This document shows, piece by piece, positions 32,528-63,908 of a stretch of 64,000 nucleotides of DNA. The notes beneath the pieces were generated by a model, which saw only the letters and a program-made list of their open reading frames with translations, was not told the DNA's origin and searched no databases. The translations under genes were made by a program, and so were the position numbers. The DNA lies in sequence record NC_027399.1. One strand, written 5' to 3'. Every line of letters starts with the position of its first letter. The stretch's first letter is position 1.

Positions 32528-33730
32528 ATGAAACTTTGTAAGCATTGCCAGAAACCAAAATTCAAACATCAACGTGAAACACTGAATTGTCCAAGTCCAA
32601 CTCGTTCATTGGCTGCGAATTTTAATAGTACAACTGTATATGATGAATATGAATCCGATCCAGTACATTATGCTATTGCACAAGTACAATTGAAAGCTGA
32701 TATTGCTGAAATTACTGCTGGTCTTGATGAACTTCTTGCTAAAGGTGATATTAACGAACAATCATATAAAATGAATTTAGCAAATGCAACTGCCAATCTT
32801 ACTCGTATTGCTGAAAATAGTAAGCGACCAGAAATTACAGAATCTAATTCAGTACTGTATGTTTCTTTTAACGATGTGGTGTATTTTTATGATGCACAAT
32901 GGGAAGGAAATGCAGTACTAGAAGGTGAAAAAGCAGTAGAAGATTTATATTTTTCTAATAAATTCAAAGAATATTATGATGCTGGTATTGTACCAGTATT
33001 AGAAGTGCTAGATAATGAAAGCACTGAAATGATTAAAGTAATTTATAATGAAGAACGTGCTGAATTTATTTCTGATATTAGTCGTGATGAACATTTGAAA
33101 GAAAGAGATACAAAACAAGAAGAAGTATCTTTATCTGATTTGAATAATGATGATTTTGTACTTCCATTGCATGATAAACAATGGGTACTAAATACTATTC
33201 GAAAAAATTCTGACGATGATTGTGATGTTGAAGAACTTGAATGTGCATTGAAAAGCTGTGATGGATCTGTTGTTCTTGGTAAACCAGATACAGAAAACGA
33301 TGGAACTTATCTAATGCTTGGTATGAAAACCAACGATGGTTTCCTTGAAAATGATTACTGTCTTCTTGATAGCATTTTGCTTAAAGAATGGAGTGTACTT
33401 GAAAATTCAGGGTTGATTGAAATTGGTACTTTTGAAAGCCACATTGACATTGATGAAAGCAAAAATAAAGGCATTACTACTTTTATGTCTGAAGTAATTG
33501 CACGTTCATTATTCAGTACTGAAGCATTGGATATCAAAAGTACTTCTGATTGTAAAGAATTCTTGAAATCAGAATACAATGTACAAAAAGCAAAACGCAT
33601 CAAGAAAGAAAAATGGGGTAAAATTGAGTACCGAATCTTTGAAGATGATAATGGTGAACAGTATACTATTGTCACTTACTGTGATAAGTTGATTTCACAT
33701 TATCCATTTGCTTACAATGAGGATTATTAA
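32528..33730 (+). CDS. Acidic hypothetical protein with an N-terminal CxxC..H..C motif
   Basis: 400 aa; SD AAGGT. Confidence 0.75.
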   Translation: MKLCKHCQKPKFKHQRETLNCPSPTRSLAANFNSTTVYDEYESDPVHYAIAQVQLKADIAEITAGLDELLAKGDINEQSYKMNLANATANLTRIAENSKRPEITESNSVLYVSFNDVVYFYDAQWEGNAVLEGEKAVEDLYFSNKFKEYYDAGIVPVLEVLDNESTEMIKVIYNEERAEFISDISRDEHLKERDTKQEEVSLSDLNNDDFVLPLHDKQWVLNTIRKNSDDDCDVEELECALKSCDGSVVLGKPDTENDGTYLMLGMKTNDGFLENDYCLLDSILLKEWSVLENSGLIEIGTFESHIDIDESKNKGITTFMSEVIARSLFSTEALDIKSTSDCKEFLKSEYNVQKAKRIKKEKWGKIEYRIFEDDNGEQYTIVTYCDKLISHYPFAYNEDY

Positions 33731-33948
33731 TGATCATCTATGCTGTTCAGGAAATTGATTTTTATACTGAAGAATACGACAATCAAAAAATTCGTAAATT
33801 ATTTTTAAATTTAGACGATGCACTTAATTATGTAAAAACTACATATGATATTAAAATTACTAACGTTAATACATGTAAAACATATATAGAAAATGATGAA
33901 GAACGTGGAGAAGTTTCCGTTGGTATTTATGAAATGAGTGTGTTATAA
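33730..33948 (+). CDS. Hypothetical protein
   Basis: TAATG coupling. Confidence 0.65.
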   Translation: MIIYAVQEIDFYTEEYDNQKIRKLFLNLDDALNYVKTTYDIKITNVNTCKTYIENDEERGEVSVGIYEMSVL

Positions 33949-33970
33949 TTAAATAATTTTTAACAAACAA

Positions 33971-34089
33971 GAAAGTACTGTCGCCGTGCATCTGGGTAAA
34001 ATCAGTATAAGTCCGTAAAGCACAATGCCAATACTCAACCATCTCCCTACTCCTTGAGATCTACCAAAGTTGAGGGTGGTAGTACTTTC
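33971..34089 (+). ncRNA. Candidate structured non-coding RNA, family unassigned
   Basis: Intergenic and GC-richer than flanks; 15-bp closing stem with three G:U pairs and four internal helices; extended -10 at 33941-49; T tract after the stem. Confidence 0.6.
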
Positions 34090-34099
34090 ACCTTTTTAG

Positions 34100-34345
34100 A
34101 TGAGAAATATTATGATTTTATTAATTATTACAGTACTGTTAGGATTTTTTAATTGTTTGATTTATTTAAGAATTGAAAAGAAAGAAGGATATTGCTTTCA
34201 TAGTACAAAAGATGGTAAATTAGTTTCAATGTTTAGTATAGAATCTCCATCAATTTGTAAATTCTTTATTCTTTTACAATTCATCCCGTTTGTTAATATT
34301 GTTTTCGCACTTTTATATTTCGTAGATATTCTTAATGGACATTAA
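34100..34345 (+). CDS. Small two-TM membrane protein
   Basis: Hydrophobic N- and C-terminal segments. Confidence 0.6.
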   Translation: MRNIMILLIITVLLGFFNCLIYLRIEKKEGYCFHSTKDGKLVSMFSIESPSICKFFILLQFIPFVNIVFALLYFVDILNGH

Positions 34346-34347
34346 TA

Positions 34348-35004
34348 ATGAATATTAAAACAACAGCAGATAAGTACTGGTTCATTATGAACCACCCAAA
34401 ATTTGTAAATAAAAATTACATTGTACCAAAAATCGAAATTGAACCACATAACGTATGTCCACAAACCAACAGAATTGAATCGTATGAATATTTGAATACA
34501 AAAGTCCAGTACTGGATTGAATTTTATATCCCAGTGCAAGAAGATGGGAAATGGGAAATTGCACATGATTACAAACTCGATTGTGGTGGCGACACCATAG
34601 ATGAAGCAATTGACTGCTTATATAATTCAGTACTAAATGAATATGGAAATTATACACAAGAAGAACTTGACAAAAAGGAGGATGAAGTATATAATTACAA
34701 CAAATCCAAGTTTGGTAGTGCAACAATGTCATATATTTTATCTAAAATTCATGAAGACATGTTTGAATACGTAAATGATAAAATTTTGCCAGATGAAGAA
34801 GCGGAATGCTATAATCATAACACGGTTGGTTATTATGAAAAAAAAATTAAAGAATTAAAAGGAACTTTAAATTCATTGATCGAATTCAAAAGAAATTCAC
34901 CAAAAGAAATGCACAAAGTAATTGACAAAGATATAAAAAACGTAGAACATGACATTTTTGCGAATGAAATGAGTATTAAATTTATGGTGGATTTGGATCT
35001 ATGA
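34348..35004 (+). CDS. Hypothetical protein
   Basis: 218 aa. Confidence 0.75.
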   Translation: MNIKTTADKYWFIMNHPKFVNKNYIVPKIEIEPHNVCPQTNRIESYEYLNTKVQYWIEFYIPVQEDGKWEIAHDYKLDCGGDTIDEAIDCLYNSVLNEYGNYTQEELDKKEDEVYNYNKSKFGSATMSYILSKIHEDMFEYVNDKILPDEEAECYNHNTVGYYEKKIKELKGTLNSLIEFKRNSPKEMHKVIDKDIKNVEHDIFANEMSIKFMVDLDL

Positions 35005-35369
35005 ATAAAGATCTTTCAAAATTAGTTGAAGACCTACGGAATATGCCGAAAATTGAACAAGTTGGTTCGTTTAAACGTTTCTTAGTTATTGCACGTGCAT
35101 TAGATAAAAAGGGACGTGTACTCAGTACCAAAACCAATTCATACACACAAACACATCCAGTACAGAAGAAGTTTGCAGTTAGGGCTGGACGGTGTGAAGC
35201 TGTATGGCTCCATGCAGAAATTCGTTGTTTGTTAGCTGCAAGAAAAGATGTTCATACATTACTAATTGCCAGAATTAACAAAGAAGGTCTTCCTGTTCCC
35301 GCAAAGCCATGTTCTGTTTGTGAACTGGCTATAAAAGAATATGGTGTAAAAAGGGTGATTTATACATGA
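35001..35369 (+). CDS. Zinc-dependent cytidine/CMP deaminase-like protein
   Basis: WLHAEI and AKPCSVC motifs. Confidence 0.78.
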   Translation: MNKDLSKLVEDLRNMPKIEQVGSFKRFLVIARALDKKGRVLSTKTNSYTQTHPVQKKFAVRAGRCEAVWLHAEIRCLLAARKDVHTLLIARINKEGLPVPAKPCSVCELAIKEYGVKRVIYT

Positions 35370-45421: not shown

Positions 45422-45458
45422 TATTTATAAATAAAAAGCCCCGATATTGGGGCTTTTT
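45422..45458 (-). promoter_or_regulatory. Late promoter TATAAATA abutting a terminator
   Basis: TATAAATA 45422-29; AAAAAGCCCC/GGGGCTTTTT 45433-58. Confidence 0.75.
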
Positions 45459-45464
45459 ATTTAA

Positions 45465-49046: not shown

Positions 49047-49088
49047 GTCATAATTCCTTTTAAATTAAAAATCTATAAAGTATTTAAT

Positions 49089-49120
49089 AAAAAATAAAGC
49101 CCAAGCTGGGCTTTATTTTT
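49089..49120 (-). terminator. Terminator between tailspike genes
   Basis: TAAAGCCCA-agc-TGGGCTTTA with A/T flanks. Confidence 0.75.
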
Positions 49121-49126
49121 AATCTT

Positions 49127-56314: not shown

Positions 56315-59305
56315 ATGTCTTTAAGTAATTTAAGCTCAAGTAACAGTAATGGGGCATTTCTTGATTATGGAGAATTCAGAAGTGGTGTTTACATCCAAAC
56401 ATCAAATCAGATTTTATACTTCACTGATGAAAATGGAAATAAAGTAGGTTATCAGTGGAAGGGACTTTTGCCTCACACAACAACAACAAATGATCCAAGC
56501 ACGGATGGTGGTATTTCGGATACTGCTTGGTGTAGTATTGTTGGCAGTGGATTTATTGAAAAATTATCAAAAGAGGGGATTGATTTAAGTTGGAAAGCAC
56601 ACTTACCAACAGTTGAAGTTTCTTACAATTTACCGCATAAATCACTAAAAATATGGGAAGAAGGTACGAATAGTACTGATAATGATTATTGGTTATACCC
56701 AGGTGATGGTACCGTGTGGAATGGGATTGGTGTTCTTGGTGATATACCAGATGCACCTTTTAAGCAAATTGTACCACAAAATAATGTAATAGAATGGAGT
56801 GCAATTGCAACAGAAGGACAAAACCAATTTACTGTACCGTATGAATTCACAAATATATCAGTTTTTATTAATGGATTATTACAGAATAAAAGTACTGGTG
56901 GATATGTAGTTAATGGTAGTACTGTTACATTAAATGGTTCATTAAAAGCTGGTGATGACATTCACGTAGTAATATCAAATATCCCTATTAAAAATATAAA
57001 TTATATTACTGATGTTGAATTATCACAACCCGATGCAGCACAAAAAATTGGATTATTGCATGGTGGAAATATACAAAATTTACAAAATTTTCTTTCTTTT
57101 GATATGTTTAATATTGATAAAACTGGTTCAACTGATGTAACTAGTCAAATAAATAATATTTTTTCATTAGCAAATCAATTAAATATTCCAATAAAACAAC
57201 ATGATGGTACATATTTAGTTTCTGGCTCCACTATATTTACAATAAACACGGATTGTGATCTATCCGGCGTAACAATTTTACCATCTTCTAATTTTACTGG
57301 ATATTTTCTATATACACAAAATGAACAGCCAACAACATATAATTCATCTTCATCATTGGTCACTTTAATAAATTCAGCAACAATTAATGCAAATGATTCA
57401 ATATTATATGGATTAATAAATGATACCACATTGGATGGTAATGCTATTTTTATGAAAGGCAATGATCCTCTATATGTTGCTCGTGGCACAACAAAAAATT
57501 GGTGGTGTAATACGAGAATATCAAATCGAGGTAAAATGGATGATTATTTAAAATATGGGGTATCAGGTATAAATGAAGTTATTTCATTACCTATATCAAA
57601 AAAAGTAACTACAATAAAATTACCAAATTGGGATTTTATAAATCAACCTGCTAATAATGGCGTAATAAGATTTAATAATATTTCTAGATATAGAATACAC
57701 GGTGGTAGTGTTTTTAATAGGCCACTTAATGATATAAATAAAGATCCAGTTATAATTAGTATAAATTATGCATATGATATAATACTTCAAGATTTTTATG
57801 ATGAATATCCATCTTGGCCATTAGTAGGTGGCTCTATTGCTTATGCATATACTATAAATTTCAACTATATTAATCGTGTTACATTTAAAGATATTAATTC
57901 ACAAGGTTATGGTTGGGGAATTGTTGGGGGGCAACTAGCAACTAATATTACATATCTTCGTTGTAATATTAATAGAGTTGATATGCATGATCCATTTATG
58001 GGGTATTTAAAAATTTTAGACTGTGATTTGGGATATTATGGCGTATCTGCAACTGGTATGGGAGATATGTATATTGAAAGAACTACTTTTAATATTGATG
58101 ATCTAGCATTTAATGGTTGGAGAGAAGTTGATGGTATAATAAACACTAGACCGGATTTTGGTGGGTGGTTTGATGGTGGTGTATATATAAAAGATATTAC
58201 AATTATTGGAGATGCATCCAAATTTAGAGAAATTAATAATCGCGGAGTTTCTTTATTTTCAGCATATTCATATAATGCAACATTAAGTTATATTCCGAAT
58301 GGATCACCAGTCGAACCGTGGGGATTTAAAGAAATTATAGTTAATGGATTACGATGCACTAAACCTATAACAGGAAAAAGATTTTCATCACTAGTATATG
58401 CTGCTTCTGTACAAAATGTAGATTATTTTCCAAGACATGTAAAATTTAATAATTGTGATTTTAATTCTTCTGATGTTGAATGTATAGATTTACATGGATG
58501 GAAAATAACACCAGACAATTCAAGTAAAACATCAATATCAAATACTATGAATTTTAAATCAACAAATTTTATAGAATTCACTGATTGTTCATTTGTGGGG
58601 TTAGAAATTTTAAGACCATATTCTTCATATGATTATATGAATTTAGAGTTAAAACTTAATAATTGTAAATATATTGGTTCAAACATTTCTCCTATTAGTT
58701 TTTACACTGATCAAGTTGGAAATTACGAGTTTACAAACTGTGATATCAATTTTATTAGTGATACTACAAAGAGTACTTCAAGTTTATCAAATAGACAGTC
58801 ATCATTTGTAATAAATGGTGGTCAGATAAATTCTGTATCAGTACCATTTTCAATATTATATAATAGTGGTTATTCGACTCCAGTTTTAGTTAATAATACA
58901 ATTTTTAAAGGTTCATTTTCACAATCATCAGTGACTTCTATTAATTTAAATGTGGCAGAATTCGCACAATTATCAAATTGTAGATTTTATAGTAATGTGA
59001 ATAATTCTTATATATCACCAGCATTATGGCTAGGTAGTACTTCGAACTCAGCAACATCAATAACTGTTATGCGTGGAAATAAAATTAATACAGTTATAAC
59101 CAATACCACAACTGTTAGTGGTATATCCATAAAAACTGATATAATTCCATTTGGAGTTGCATCTGGACACATAAATGGGTCTTTTTATGTTGATGCTACT
59201 GGAACAACTGGAACATACCAATTGTATTTAAATTCGTTGAATTTGAAATCACAAATTGGAAAAATTGTTTCAAATGGTACAATATCAGGAATTTATTTAC
59301 AGTAA
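56315..59305 (+). CDS. Tailspike / putative capsule depolymerase with one docking-type repeat, 996 aa
   Basis: MSL-type N-terminus, AHLPTVEV module, INGLLQ repeat, DKTGSTDVT..I head motif, beta-helix. Confidence 0.87.
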   Translation: MSLSNLSSSNSNGAFLDYGEFRSGVYIQTSNQILYFTDENGNKVGYQWKGLLPHTTTTNDPSTDGGISDTAWCSIVGSGFIEKLSKEGIDLSWKAHLPTVEVSYNLPHKSLKIWEEGTNSTDNDYWLYPGDGTVWNGIGVLGDIPDAPFKQIVPQNNVIEWSAIATEGQNQFTVPYEFTNISVFINGLLQNKSTGGYVVNGSTVTLNGSLKAGDDIHVVISNIPIKNINYITDVELSQPDAAQKIGLLHGGNIQNLQNFLSFDMFNIDKTGSTDVTSQINNIFSLANQLNIPIKQHDGTYLVSGSTIFTINTDCDLSGVTILPSSNFTGYFLYTQNEQPTTYNSSSSLVTLINSATINANDSILYGLINDTTLDGNAIFMKGNDPLYVARGTTKNWWCNTRISNRGKMDDYLKYGVSGINEVISLPISKKVTTIKLPNWDFINQPANNGVIRFNNISRYRIHGGSVFNRPLNDINKDPVIISINYAYDIILQDFYDEYPSWPLVGGSIAYAYTINFNYINRVTFKDINSQGYGWGIVGGQLATNITYLRCNINRVDMHDPFMGYLKILDCDLGYYGVSATGMGDMYIERTTFNIDDLAFNGWREVDGIINTRPDFGGWFDGGVYIKDITIIGDASKFREINNRGVSLFSAYSYNATLSYIPNGSPVEPWGFKEIIVNGLRCTKPITGKRFSSLVYAASVQNVDYFPRHVKFNNCDFNSSDVECIDLHGWKITPDNSSKTSISNTMNFKSTNFIEFTDCSFVGLEILRPYSSYDYMNLELKLNNCKYIGSNISPISFYTDQVGNYEFTNCDINFISDTTKSTSSLSNRQSSFVINGGQINSVSVPFSILYNSGYSTPVLVNNTIFKGSFSQSSVTSINLNVAEFAQLSNCRFYSNVNNSYISPALWLGSTSNSATSITVMRGNKINTVITNTTTVSGISIKTDIIPFGVASGHINGSFYVDATGTTGTYQLYLNSLNLKSQIGKIVSNGTISGIYLQ

Positions 59306-59309
59306 AAAT

Positions 59310-59345
59310 AAAAGCACCTTCGGGTGCTTTTATTTTTACTAAATA
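59310..59345 (+). terminator. Terminator with a UUCG loop followed by late promoter CTAAATA
   Basis: AAAAGCACC-TTCG-GGTGCTTTT; CTAAATA 59339-45. Confidence 0.8.
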
Positions 59346-63873: not shown

Positions 63874-63908
63874 AAAAAAAAGCCGCAATTTATGTTGCGG
63901 CTTTTTTT
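63874..63908 (+). terminator. Rho-independent terminator
   Basis: AGCCGCAA-tttatg-TTGCGGCT followed by a T run. Confidence 0.85.

Follow-up and report, generated by a model that had tools for sequence, protein, structure and literature searches.

The genome of Klebsiella phage K64-1 holds a structured RNA in a gap of 151 nucleotides (nt) between the end of a 72-amino-acid (aa) open reading frame (ORF; 33948) and the next ATG (34100). Coordinates are those of the window, the whole 64,000-nt stretch of NC_027399.1 that we analysed, which is 100% identical in this region to K64-1, a RaK2-like jumbo phage of 346.6 kb belonging to Alcyoneusvirus. A first-pass annotation, made from the sequence alone, had proposed a discrete multi-stem small RNA with its own promoter here, possibly a decoy for a defence protein. 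The non-coding, multi-stem, plus-strand RNA is borne out by covariation among homologues, and the structure drawn for it was largely right; the promoter and the decoy role are unsupported. We conclude that the element is a genuine plus-strand structured RNA shared by RaK2-like jumbo phages, and that the family is restricted to these phages. As to what it does, we tentatively favour the view that it is a conserved non-coding RNA built into a terminator hairpin, with invariant loops that would bind a partner.

BLAST found the non-coding stretch conserved in Erwinia phage Hallingskeid, Klebsiella phage fENko-Kae01, Serratia phage BF, Yersinia phage fHe-Yen9-04 and the Erwinia pEa_SNUABM phages, in each case at the same syntenic position, upstream of homologues of a 218-aa protein and of deoxycytidine monophosphate (dCMP) deaminase. 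Syntenic loci were gathered from IMG/VR and metagenomes by means of core DNA patterns and alignment of the 218-aa protein. We built two covariance models, R1 from sequences of the K64-1 group and their observed structure, and R2 from all collected homologues. The models matched about 20 distinct phage contigs from several genera, GAP32, CBB and Munch among them, with E = 1e-8 to 1e-25 (1e-8 to 1e-19 for R1). R1 and R2 scored the K64-1 site at 160 and 129 bits, respectively, on the plus strand only, and R2 matched the window once and unrelated loci not at all.

Alignment of the raw sequences with MAFFT followed by RNAalifold misplaced the stems and gave a wrong fold, and an alignment guided by the covariance model was used instead. 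In this 21-sequence alignment, 92.6% of pair cells hold standard pairs; sliding the partners by 1-3 columns lowers the figure to 38-45% (about 41%). Changes on both sides are seen in 24 of 33 pairs, although in helices P1 and P2 some of this "covariation" in the model-fitted alignment reflects register shifts. None of 500 shuffles reached the observed covariation, and RNAalifold independently predicts helices P1, P2, P2b and P3. Covariation in related jumbo phages, which had been named beforehand as a check on the RNA, is thus present, and is strong in P1 and P3. The first-pass annotation had also read the G:U pairs as a sign that the plus strand folds as RNA. Consistent with this, the homologue alignment contains 32 G:U cells but only 4 A.C cells, indicating that the plus strand is the folded strand. 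The element is not coding, since no ORF is conserved and several homologues have stops in all six frames. Some 45 unpaired bases never vary, while the adjacent 218-aa protein is only 30-42% identical; a near-invariant core beside so diverged a protein argues for strong constraint on the RNA.

The K64-1 sequence alone would not have been sufficient to establish the fold. Every pairing that had been described is present: P1 joins 33971-85 to 34075-89 through 15 bp, three of them G:U; GTGC (33986-89) can pair with GCAC (34020-23), enclosing CTGG (33992-95) and TCAG (34002-05); and CTCAAC (34034-39) pairs with GTTGAG (34069-74), enclosing ATCTC (34041-45) and GAGAT (34056-60). The element is also richer in G+C than its surroundings, as had been noticed (0.45, against 0.31 for the window). 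The minimum free energy structure of the plus strand (-32.1 kcal/mol) reproduces P1, P2 and P3, with z = -1.93 and 5 of 200 shuffles equally good; the minus strand is no better than shuffles (z = +0.78). The window contains 68 inverted repeats that are 12 nt or longer and lie within 200 nt. The single-sequence fold is therefore marginal, barely above chance, and proof of the structure comes from the comparison of homologues.

The whole domain, the site matched by the covariance models, runs from the 5′ arm to the 3′ arm of P1 (33971-34089, plus strand like all of its parts; ~119 nt) and folds as a four-way junction. P1 pairs GAAAGUACUGUCGCC (33971-33985) with GGUGGUAGUACUUUC (34075-34089). Its outer 9-11 bp are AU-rich, and 10 of its 15 pairs vary on both sides among homologues, partly through register shifts in the model-fitted alignment; where K64-1 has the GUC/GGU pairs, other clades have an internal loop, A.G or AA/G. 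The inner GCC:GG(C/U) does not vary except at G33983. The three G:U pairs that had been noted in P1 are all present in K64-1, but G33983 is an A, forming an A:U pair, in all other Alcyoneusviruses. Inner P1 and junction J1/2 together carry the motif GCCGUGC, followed by two variable bases that are AU in K64-1 (33983-33991); CCGUGC is identical in all 21 aligned sequences and the leading G is conserved in at least 80%.

P2 (33992-34005) is a hairpin with an A-rich loop, CUGG-GUAAAA-UCAG in K64-1 and CUGG-CAAAAU-CCAG in most relatives. All of its cells are paired, with alternation between G:U and G:C, and the GAP32-like group gains one U:A pair. Junction J2/2b (34006-34019) contains the near-invariant UAAG(U/A)CCGU (34008-34016) and leads into P2b (34020-34028), a variable mini-hairpin of 2-3 bp (GCA-CAA-UGC) whose equivalents elsewhere are AGC/GCU, CGC/GCG, CUC/GAG or GC-N6-GC, and of which RNAalifold retains 2 bp. 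P2b takes the bases that the first-pass annotation had paired with GTGC. That outer extension of P2 (GTGC/GCAC) does not hold up as part of the common structure: it is lineage-specific, occurs in only about half of the homologues and competes with the covarying P2b.

P3 pairs CUCAAC (34034-34039) with GUUGAG (34069-34074) and shows compensatory changes in all six pairs, its lineage variants being CUCAAC/GUUGAG, CAGGGU/ACCCUG, CAUUGA/UCAAUG, CUGGAA/UUCCAG and CUGAGA/UCUUGG. The 3′ arm of P3 abuts P1, so that the two helices could stack coaxially. Within P3 lies hairpin P3a (34041-34060, AUCUC...GAGAU), whose loop carries CCUACUC (34046-34052). All 21 sequences have this motif unchanged; the stem of P3a, 87% paired, is short or weak in many of the homologues and is absent from the RNAalifold prediction. 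Next comes the unpaired, conserved CUACCAA (34061-34067), with a near-invariant UACCAA core (34062-67). Beyond P1 is the 3′ tail ACCUUUUUAG (34090-34099), with its U tract at 34093-97; the CCTTTTT that had been reported to follow the element is indeed present, at 34091-97.

The flanks of the RNA resemble those of an intrinsic terminator. Every homologue is A-rich on the 5′ side of P1 and has a U-rich tail adjoining its 3′ side, then UUAAUU, with a Shine-Dalgarno (S-D) sequence and start codon within 10-26 nt of the tail. The stem and adjacent U tract of an intrinsic terminator are thus found throughout, P1 being 11-15 bp long; in the GAP32 group the P1 stem leads directly into UUUCUUUUU. The compact hairpin with a G+C-rich base is not: the "loop" is a multi-branched structure of ~90 nt and the base of the stem is AU-rich. 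Our terminator scan, which demands a loop of 3-8 nt, cannot call such an element. A K64-1 terminator at 49087-49123, AUAAAAAAUAAAGCCCA-loop-UGGGCUUUAUUUUUAAU, has the same A-tract/GCC...GGC/U-tract form, and R1 aligns it weakly to P1. Long perfect hairpins with an A tract, GC core and U tract occur at 49087-49123, 45428-45463, 59301-59340 and 63875-63908; judged by their sequence, these four are probably bidirectional intrinsic terminators.

The same syntenic slot is occupied by plain terminators in two relatives. Xanthomonas phage XbC2 has a canonical GC-rich terminator there (contig L115, 1454-1476). In E. coli phage 121Q (L052, 2456-2479) the slot holds AGTACTGC-loop-GCAGTACT and then T5, the sequence of P1 minus the core. 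We found nothing at the slot in UE-S1. The terminators of K64-1, XbC2 and 121Q share with the element an A-rich 5′ flank, a G+C stem top (GCC...GGC), a U-rich tail, UUAAUU, an S-D sequence and an ATG, so that a tail like that of the element also follows the plain terminators of XbC2 and 121Q. They share the slot itself, and 121Q shares the stem sequence AGTACTG. They differ in having a loop of 3-8 nt, as opposed to the conserved ~90-nt four-way junction of the element, with its ~45 invariant bases.

From the structure, strand, conservation, position and terminator-like flanks of the element, together with its lack of coding capacity, we infer that it may terminate transcription, accumulate as a stable RNA and bind a partner. 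P1, which is long, AU-rich and capped by GCC:GGC, would form a terminator with the U-rich tail, the usual small loop being replaced by the ~90-nt four-way-junction core (P2, P2b and P3/P3a). Transcription reaching the element from upstream, or perhaps, in K64-1, from a nearby promoter, would stop or pause at P1 and its U tract. Trimming of the 5′ side to the base of P1 would leave a nuclease-protected RNA of ~125 nt with both ends paired. The motifs that are both unpaired and invariant (GCCGUGC, the A-rich P2 loop, UAAGNCCGU, CCUACUC and UACCAA) could then present a surface for a conserved partner from phage or host, be it protein or RNA. The 218-aa protein, dCMP deaminase and NrdD would be expressed by read-through. 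Enterobacterial small RNAs of the CpxQ/SroC/DapZ type are derived from the 3′ ends of transcripts and bear a terminator. The element would resemble them in lying at the 3′ end of an upstream coding transcript, in its stem and U tail and in being freed by 5′ processing; it differs in being multi-branched, closed by the terminator stem itself and equipped with several invariant motifs, where those RNAs have one short seed and a simple terminator hairpin.

Two further points favour a stable RNA of this kind: the flanking genes vary, so the element is independent of its neighbours, and T4-type phages have stable RNAs inside operons (T4 rnaC/rnaD). Several observations weigh against it. A stem with an AU-rich base and a 90-nt multiloop on top makes, by textbook criteria, a poor intrinsic terminator. 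The downstream genes begin 10-26 nt past the tail, which leaves no space for a promoter; substantial read-through is therefore required, and this would fit cis-regulation equally well. The four separate invariant junction motifs look more like the core of an aptamer or ribozyme than like a base-pairing small RNA. No partner was found, the neighbouring 218-aa protein having no informative fold or family match, and the 121Q-like phages and XbC2 do without the core.

The best placed of the alternatives, though we consider it unlikely overall, is an attenuator that acts in cis and is regulated, as a riboswitch or through a protein. Here the core would sense a small molecule (e.g. a pyrimidine or deoxynucleotide) or bind a protein and thereby set the speed at which P1 closes, and closure of P1 would decide whether polymerase terminates at the U tract or continues into the genes for the 218-aa protein, dCMP deaminase and NrdD. 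The strand of the element never changes, a start codon always follows at 10-26 nt, and the nucleotide-metabolism cluster downstream is the same throughout; the interval between tail and next gene is too short for a promoter. The U tract directly follows P1, so that closure of P1 could itself be the expression platform. Moreover, aptamers typically show highly conserved junction bases among stems that vary and covary, and this pattern is found here upstream of functionally coherent genes. Like the aptamers of transcriptional riboswitches, the element has covarying stems around invariant junction bases, stands upstream of metabolic genes and is followed by a U tract. However, its P1, at 11-15 bp, is far stabler than the P1 helices that ligands gate, and inspection of the alignment by eye revealed no separate expression platform and no conserved alternative (anti-terminator) pairing. 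In addition, unrelated ORFs spanning 0.3-1.7 kb separate the RNA from the deaminase cluster in several lineages, 121Q and XbC2 retain the genes with a plain terminator only, and no known riboswitch class in Rfam fits.

We regard it as distinctly unlikely that the element is an RNA-processing element, either a site cut by RNase III or RNase E or itself a new self-cleaving ribozyme, that would divide a polycistronic transcript into halves of different stability. P1 stacked on P3 would make a helix of ~21 bp between AU-rich single strands, and small ribozymes, too, combine variable stems with a core that does not vary. The RNase III sites of phage T7 consist of a long helix with an internal loop between co-directional genes; the quasi-continuous P1-P3 helix likewise has an internal loop and co-directional genes on either side. 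RNase III sites do not, however, need ~45 invariant unpaired bases, and no known ribozyme family fits, even at an Rfam threshold of E <= 10.

Less probable again, in our view, is a stand-alone small RNA with its own promoter that would serve as a decoy or mimic against host defence (CRISPR, retron, toxin or tRNA-targeting nuclease). The promoter proposed by the first-pass annotation can be seen in K64-1: a sigma70-like site, TTGGTA-18-TGtTATAAT (33920-33949, plus strand), matches the consensus at 10 of 12 positions, TTGGTA lying 18 nt upstream of an extended -10 (33941-49) that is 21 nt before P1 in K64-1 and its close relatives. The site is confined to the K64-1/RaK2 group and overlaps the end of the 72-aa ORF, the -10 overlapping the stop codon. 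A second good site, an 11/12 match 15 nt before P1, occurs in fHe-Yen9-04. The promoter is not conserved, however: of 19 homologues scanned for promoters of the sigma70-like type, 12 have none within 90 nt, the background rate being 17% of windows, and the sites that do occur differ in position. In most homologues the upstream stop codon lies 5-25 nt before P1. Promoter-like sites are not enriched in the window (31 found, 24.8 +/- 5.4 expected).

Phages are known to make RNA decoys, such as RNA anti-CRISPRs and pseudo-ToxI, but the element shows no similarity to CRISPR repeats, tRNA, transfer-messenger RNA (tmRNA), 6S RNA or retron RNAs. The suggested tRNA mimicry found no support, since ARAGORN called no tRNA or tmRNA gene in the window and Rfam tRNA was negative. 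Nor does the element have tRNA traits: there is no GUUCRANYC T loop, and its junction spacers are 6, 13 and 5 nt, as opposed to 2, 1 and variable in tRNA. Rfam was likewise negative for the 6S-like or CRISPR-repeat similarity that had been considered. No reverse transcriptase, toxin, cas or other defence-related gene lies among the neighbours, PADLOC was negative, and there are no tandem repeats. The decoy and riboregulator ideas are speculation.

Inverted repeats and promoter-like hexamers are common in an AT-rich genome, and RefSeq places a 30-aa minus-strand ORF at 33949-34038, but a chance repeat, a DNA-level element (a cruciform or protein-binding site) or a small ORF is effectively refuted by the compensatory changes in P1 and P3, by the tolerance of G:U on one strand only (32 versus 4) and by all-frame stops in several homologues with no conserved frame. 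That ORF, ACQ27_gp657, falls inside the element, is not conserved in homologues and is probably a spurious gene call.

The first-pass annotation had listed the RNA as a novel candidate, and Rfam 15 gave no match at gathering thresholds in the whole window; at E <= 10, positions 33700-34400 gave three chance-level matches only, all outside the core of the element. A 20-base core pattern had 12 matches in 185,579 bacterial and archaeal genomes, all in GC-rich coding sequence at the rate expected by chance, and none fits the model. Looser patterns of 16-17 bases gave mostly chance matches in IMG/VR. Homology to T4 rnaC/rnaD was rejected: R1, run with filters off, had no match on the T4 tRNA/rnaC/rnaD locus at E < 2. 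The T4 RNAs (species 1 and 2) are comparable as small stable RNAs of unknown function among T4-type phage genes, processed from longer transcripts. They have no sequence or structure similarity to the element, which lacks the tRNA-like T arm of rnaC and does not lie in a tRNA cluster as the T4 pair does. A survey of IMG/VR reported 8495 anonymous 'DNAVirus_X' candidate RNAs, 1241 of them overlapping predicted terminators (PMC10690425). The evidence for those candidates is of the same type, covariation in phage intergenic regions, and the family described here, which is not in Rfam 15, may possibly be among them. An RNA-seq study of PA5oct, a related phage, reported four ncRNAs, located elsewhere in that genome than the element; the two that were discussed reportedly have no similarity to any GenBank sequence beyond isolate MIJ3.

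One candidate partner emerged from a complementarity. Two invariant unpaired motifs of the 3′ domain are involved: (U)CCCUACUC is the complement of G100-A108, and (C)UACCA that of U74-G79, in enterobacterial (E. coli) 5S rRNA. Both strands of helix V/loop E are thereby covered, with the motifs ordered as an antisense RNA would require, and in some lineages the second complementary site is extended to 9 nt. Predicted duplexes reach -24 to -30 kcal/mol for most variants, with two weaker at -19.3 and -16.4. For 13 of 18 variants the duplex is the best of 2410 background windows, and comparison with segment shuffles gives p = 0.0003-0.02. In such a scheme the RNA would target host 5S rRNA, clamping the nascent or free molecule and disturbing or re-routing assembly of the 5S ribonucleoprotein or the ribosome. 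We think this very improbable. The match is post hoc, 8-9-mers that match rRNA are common by chance, p in a local alignment is no better than ~0.05, and the result is not significant after allowing for ~100 candidate abundant RNAs; furthermore, loop E is structured and protein-bound in ribosomes. The element is not itself a relative of 5S rRNA, as Rfam gave no 5S match and local alignment yielded a single 9-mer (p ~0.05). A search for phage mRNA targets of the CCCUACUC loop found no complement in the 64-kb window besides the element itself.

To our knowledge, no regulatory RNA has been described in RaK2-like jumbo phages, although members such as K64-1, RaK2, GAP32, CBB and BF are under study as therapeutic phages for use against Klebsiella and other Enterobacterales. 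Given that the element is nearly invariant beside proteins at ~35% identity, we reasoned that it does something these phages need. As a stable RNA it would constitute a new orphan class, comparable to the unexplained rnaC/rnaD of T4; should the closing helix prove to be a terminator gated by a ligand or a protein, the element would represent an unusual, riboswitch-like control of phage deoxynucleotide supply. In either case it is a compact and defined target, ~120 nt in one copy, and it corrects the apparently spurious gp657 annotation.

The genes around the element are all on the plus strand on its 3′ side. The upstream slot, held in K64-1 by the 72-aa ORF (33730-33948, plus strand), changes from lineage to lineage. 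Downstream, an ORF for an 81-aa membrane protein (34100-34345) is an optional insert that separates the RNA from the gene for the 218-aa protein (34348-35004; phrog_16370), the syntenic downstream partner in all lineages. dCMP deaminase (35001-35369) follows directly, and then NrdD; this dCMP deaminase/nrdD cluster lies downstream of the element in every lineage. The genes flanking the element vary on either side, and additional ORFs are often inserted right next to it, its borders being hot spots of gene insertion. RCIP0023 (L048, 912-1724) has two additional ORFs immediately 3′ of the element. In fHe-Yen9-04 (L009, 12682-13614) a 310-aa ORF with a DUF723/treble-clef zinc finger, homing-endonuclease-like, lies immediately 5′, with a strong promoter-like site, and in other contigs (among L061, L074, L058, L059 and L076) ORFs of 0.3-1.7 kb separate the RNA from the 218-aa gene. 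A tyrosyl-tRNA synthetase gene lies less than 1.5 kb from the element in two lineages, upstream in Serratia phage BF (L004, 1-586) and downstream in L006 (3008-4246); no tRNA-Tyr-like feature was found in the RNA.

The 218-aa protein is conserved across RaK2-like phages, and its N-terminal domain of ~100 aa also stands alone in ~130-kb phages of Vibrio and Shewanella and in GC-rich phages. Its invariant residues (H16, P17, P33, H34, C37, H73, D78, G80 and G81) suggest a metal or active site. The AlphaFold 2 model is confident (mean predicted local distance difference test score, pLDDT, 83); searches of Pfam, PHROGs, PADLOC and PDB sequences, and Foldseek against PDB and BFVD, returned no function. 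By eye alone, the N-terminus of the model looks alpha-beta-beta-beta-alpha, like HicB or a double-stranded RNA-binding domain (dsRBD), and matches to dsRBDs are weak (E > 0.5).

Finally, the hexamer AGTACT is present in both arms of P1 (33974-79 and 34081-86), as had been pointed out, but its presence there is not special, because the hexamer is in excess throughout the RaK2-like clade. It is 7.3-fold over-represented in the window (158 sites, 21.6 expected) and 6-12-fold in every RaK2-like stretch examined, including L008, L005, L009, L052 and L063; T4 and an E. coli rrn locus show no such excess. The sites fall mostly inside genes, often as TTCAGTACTGAA, with further examples near the element at 34132-37 and 34373-78. 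The palindromic hexamers CAGCTG, AGGCCT, AGCGCT and CGATCG are wholly absent. The excess of AGTACT suggests a DNA-level signal of the clade.

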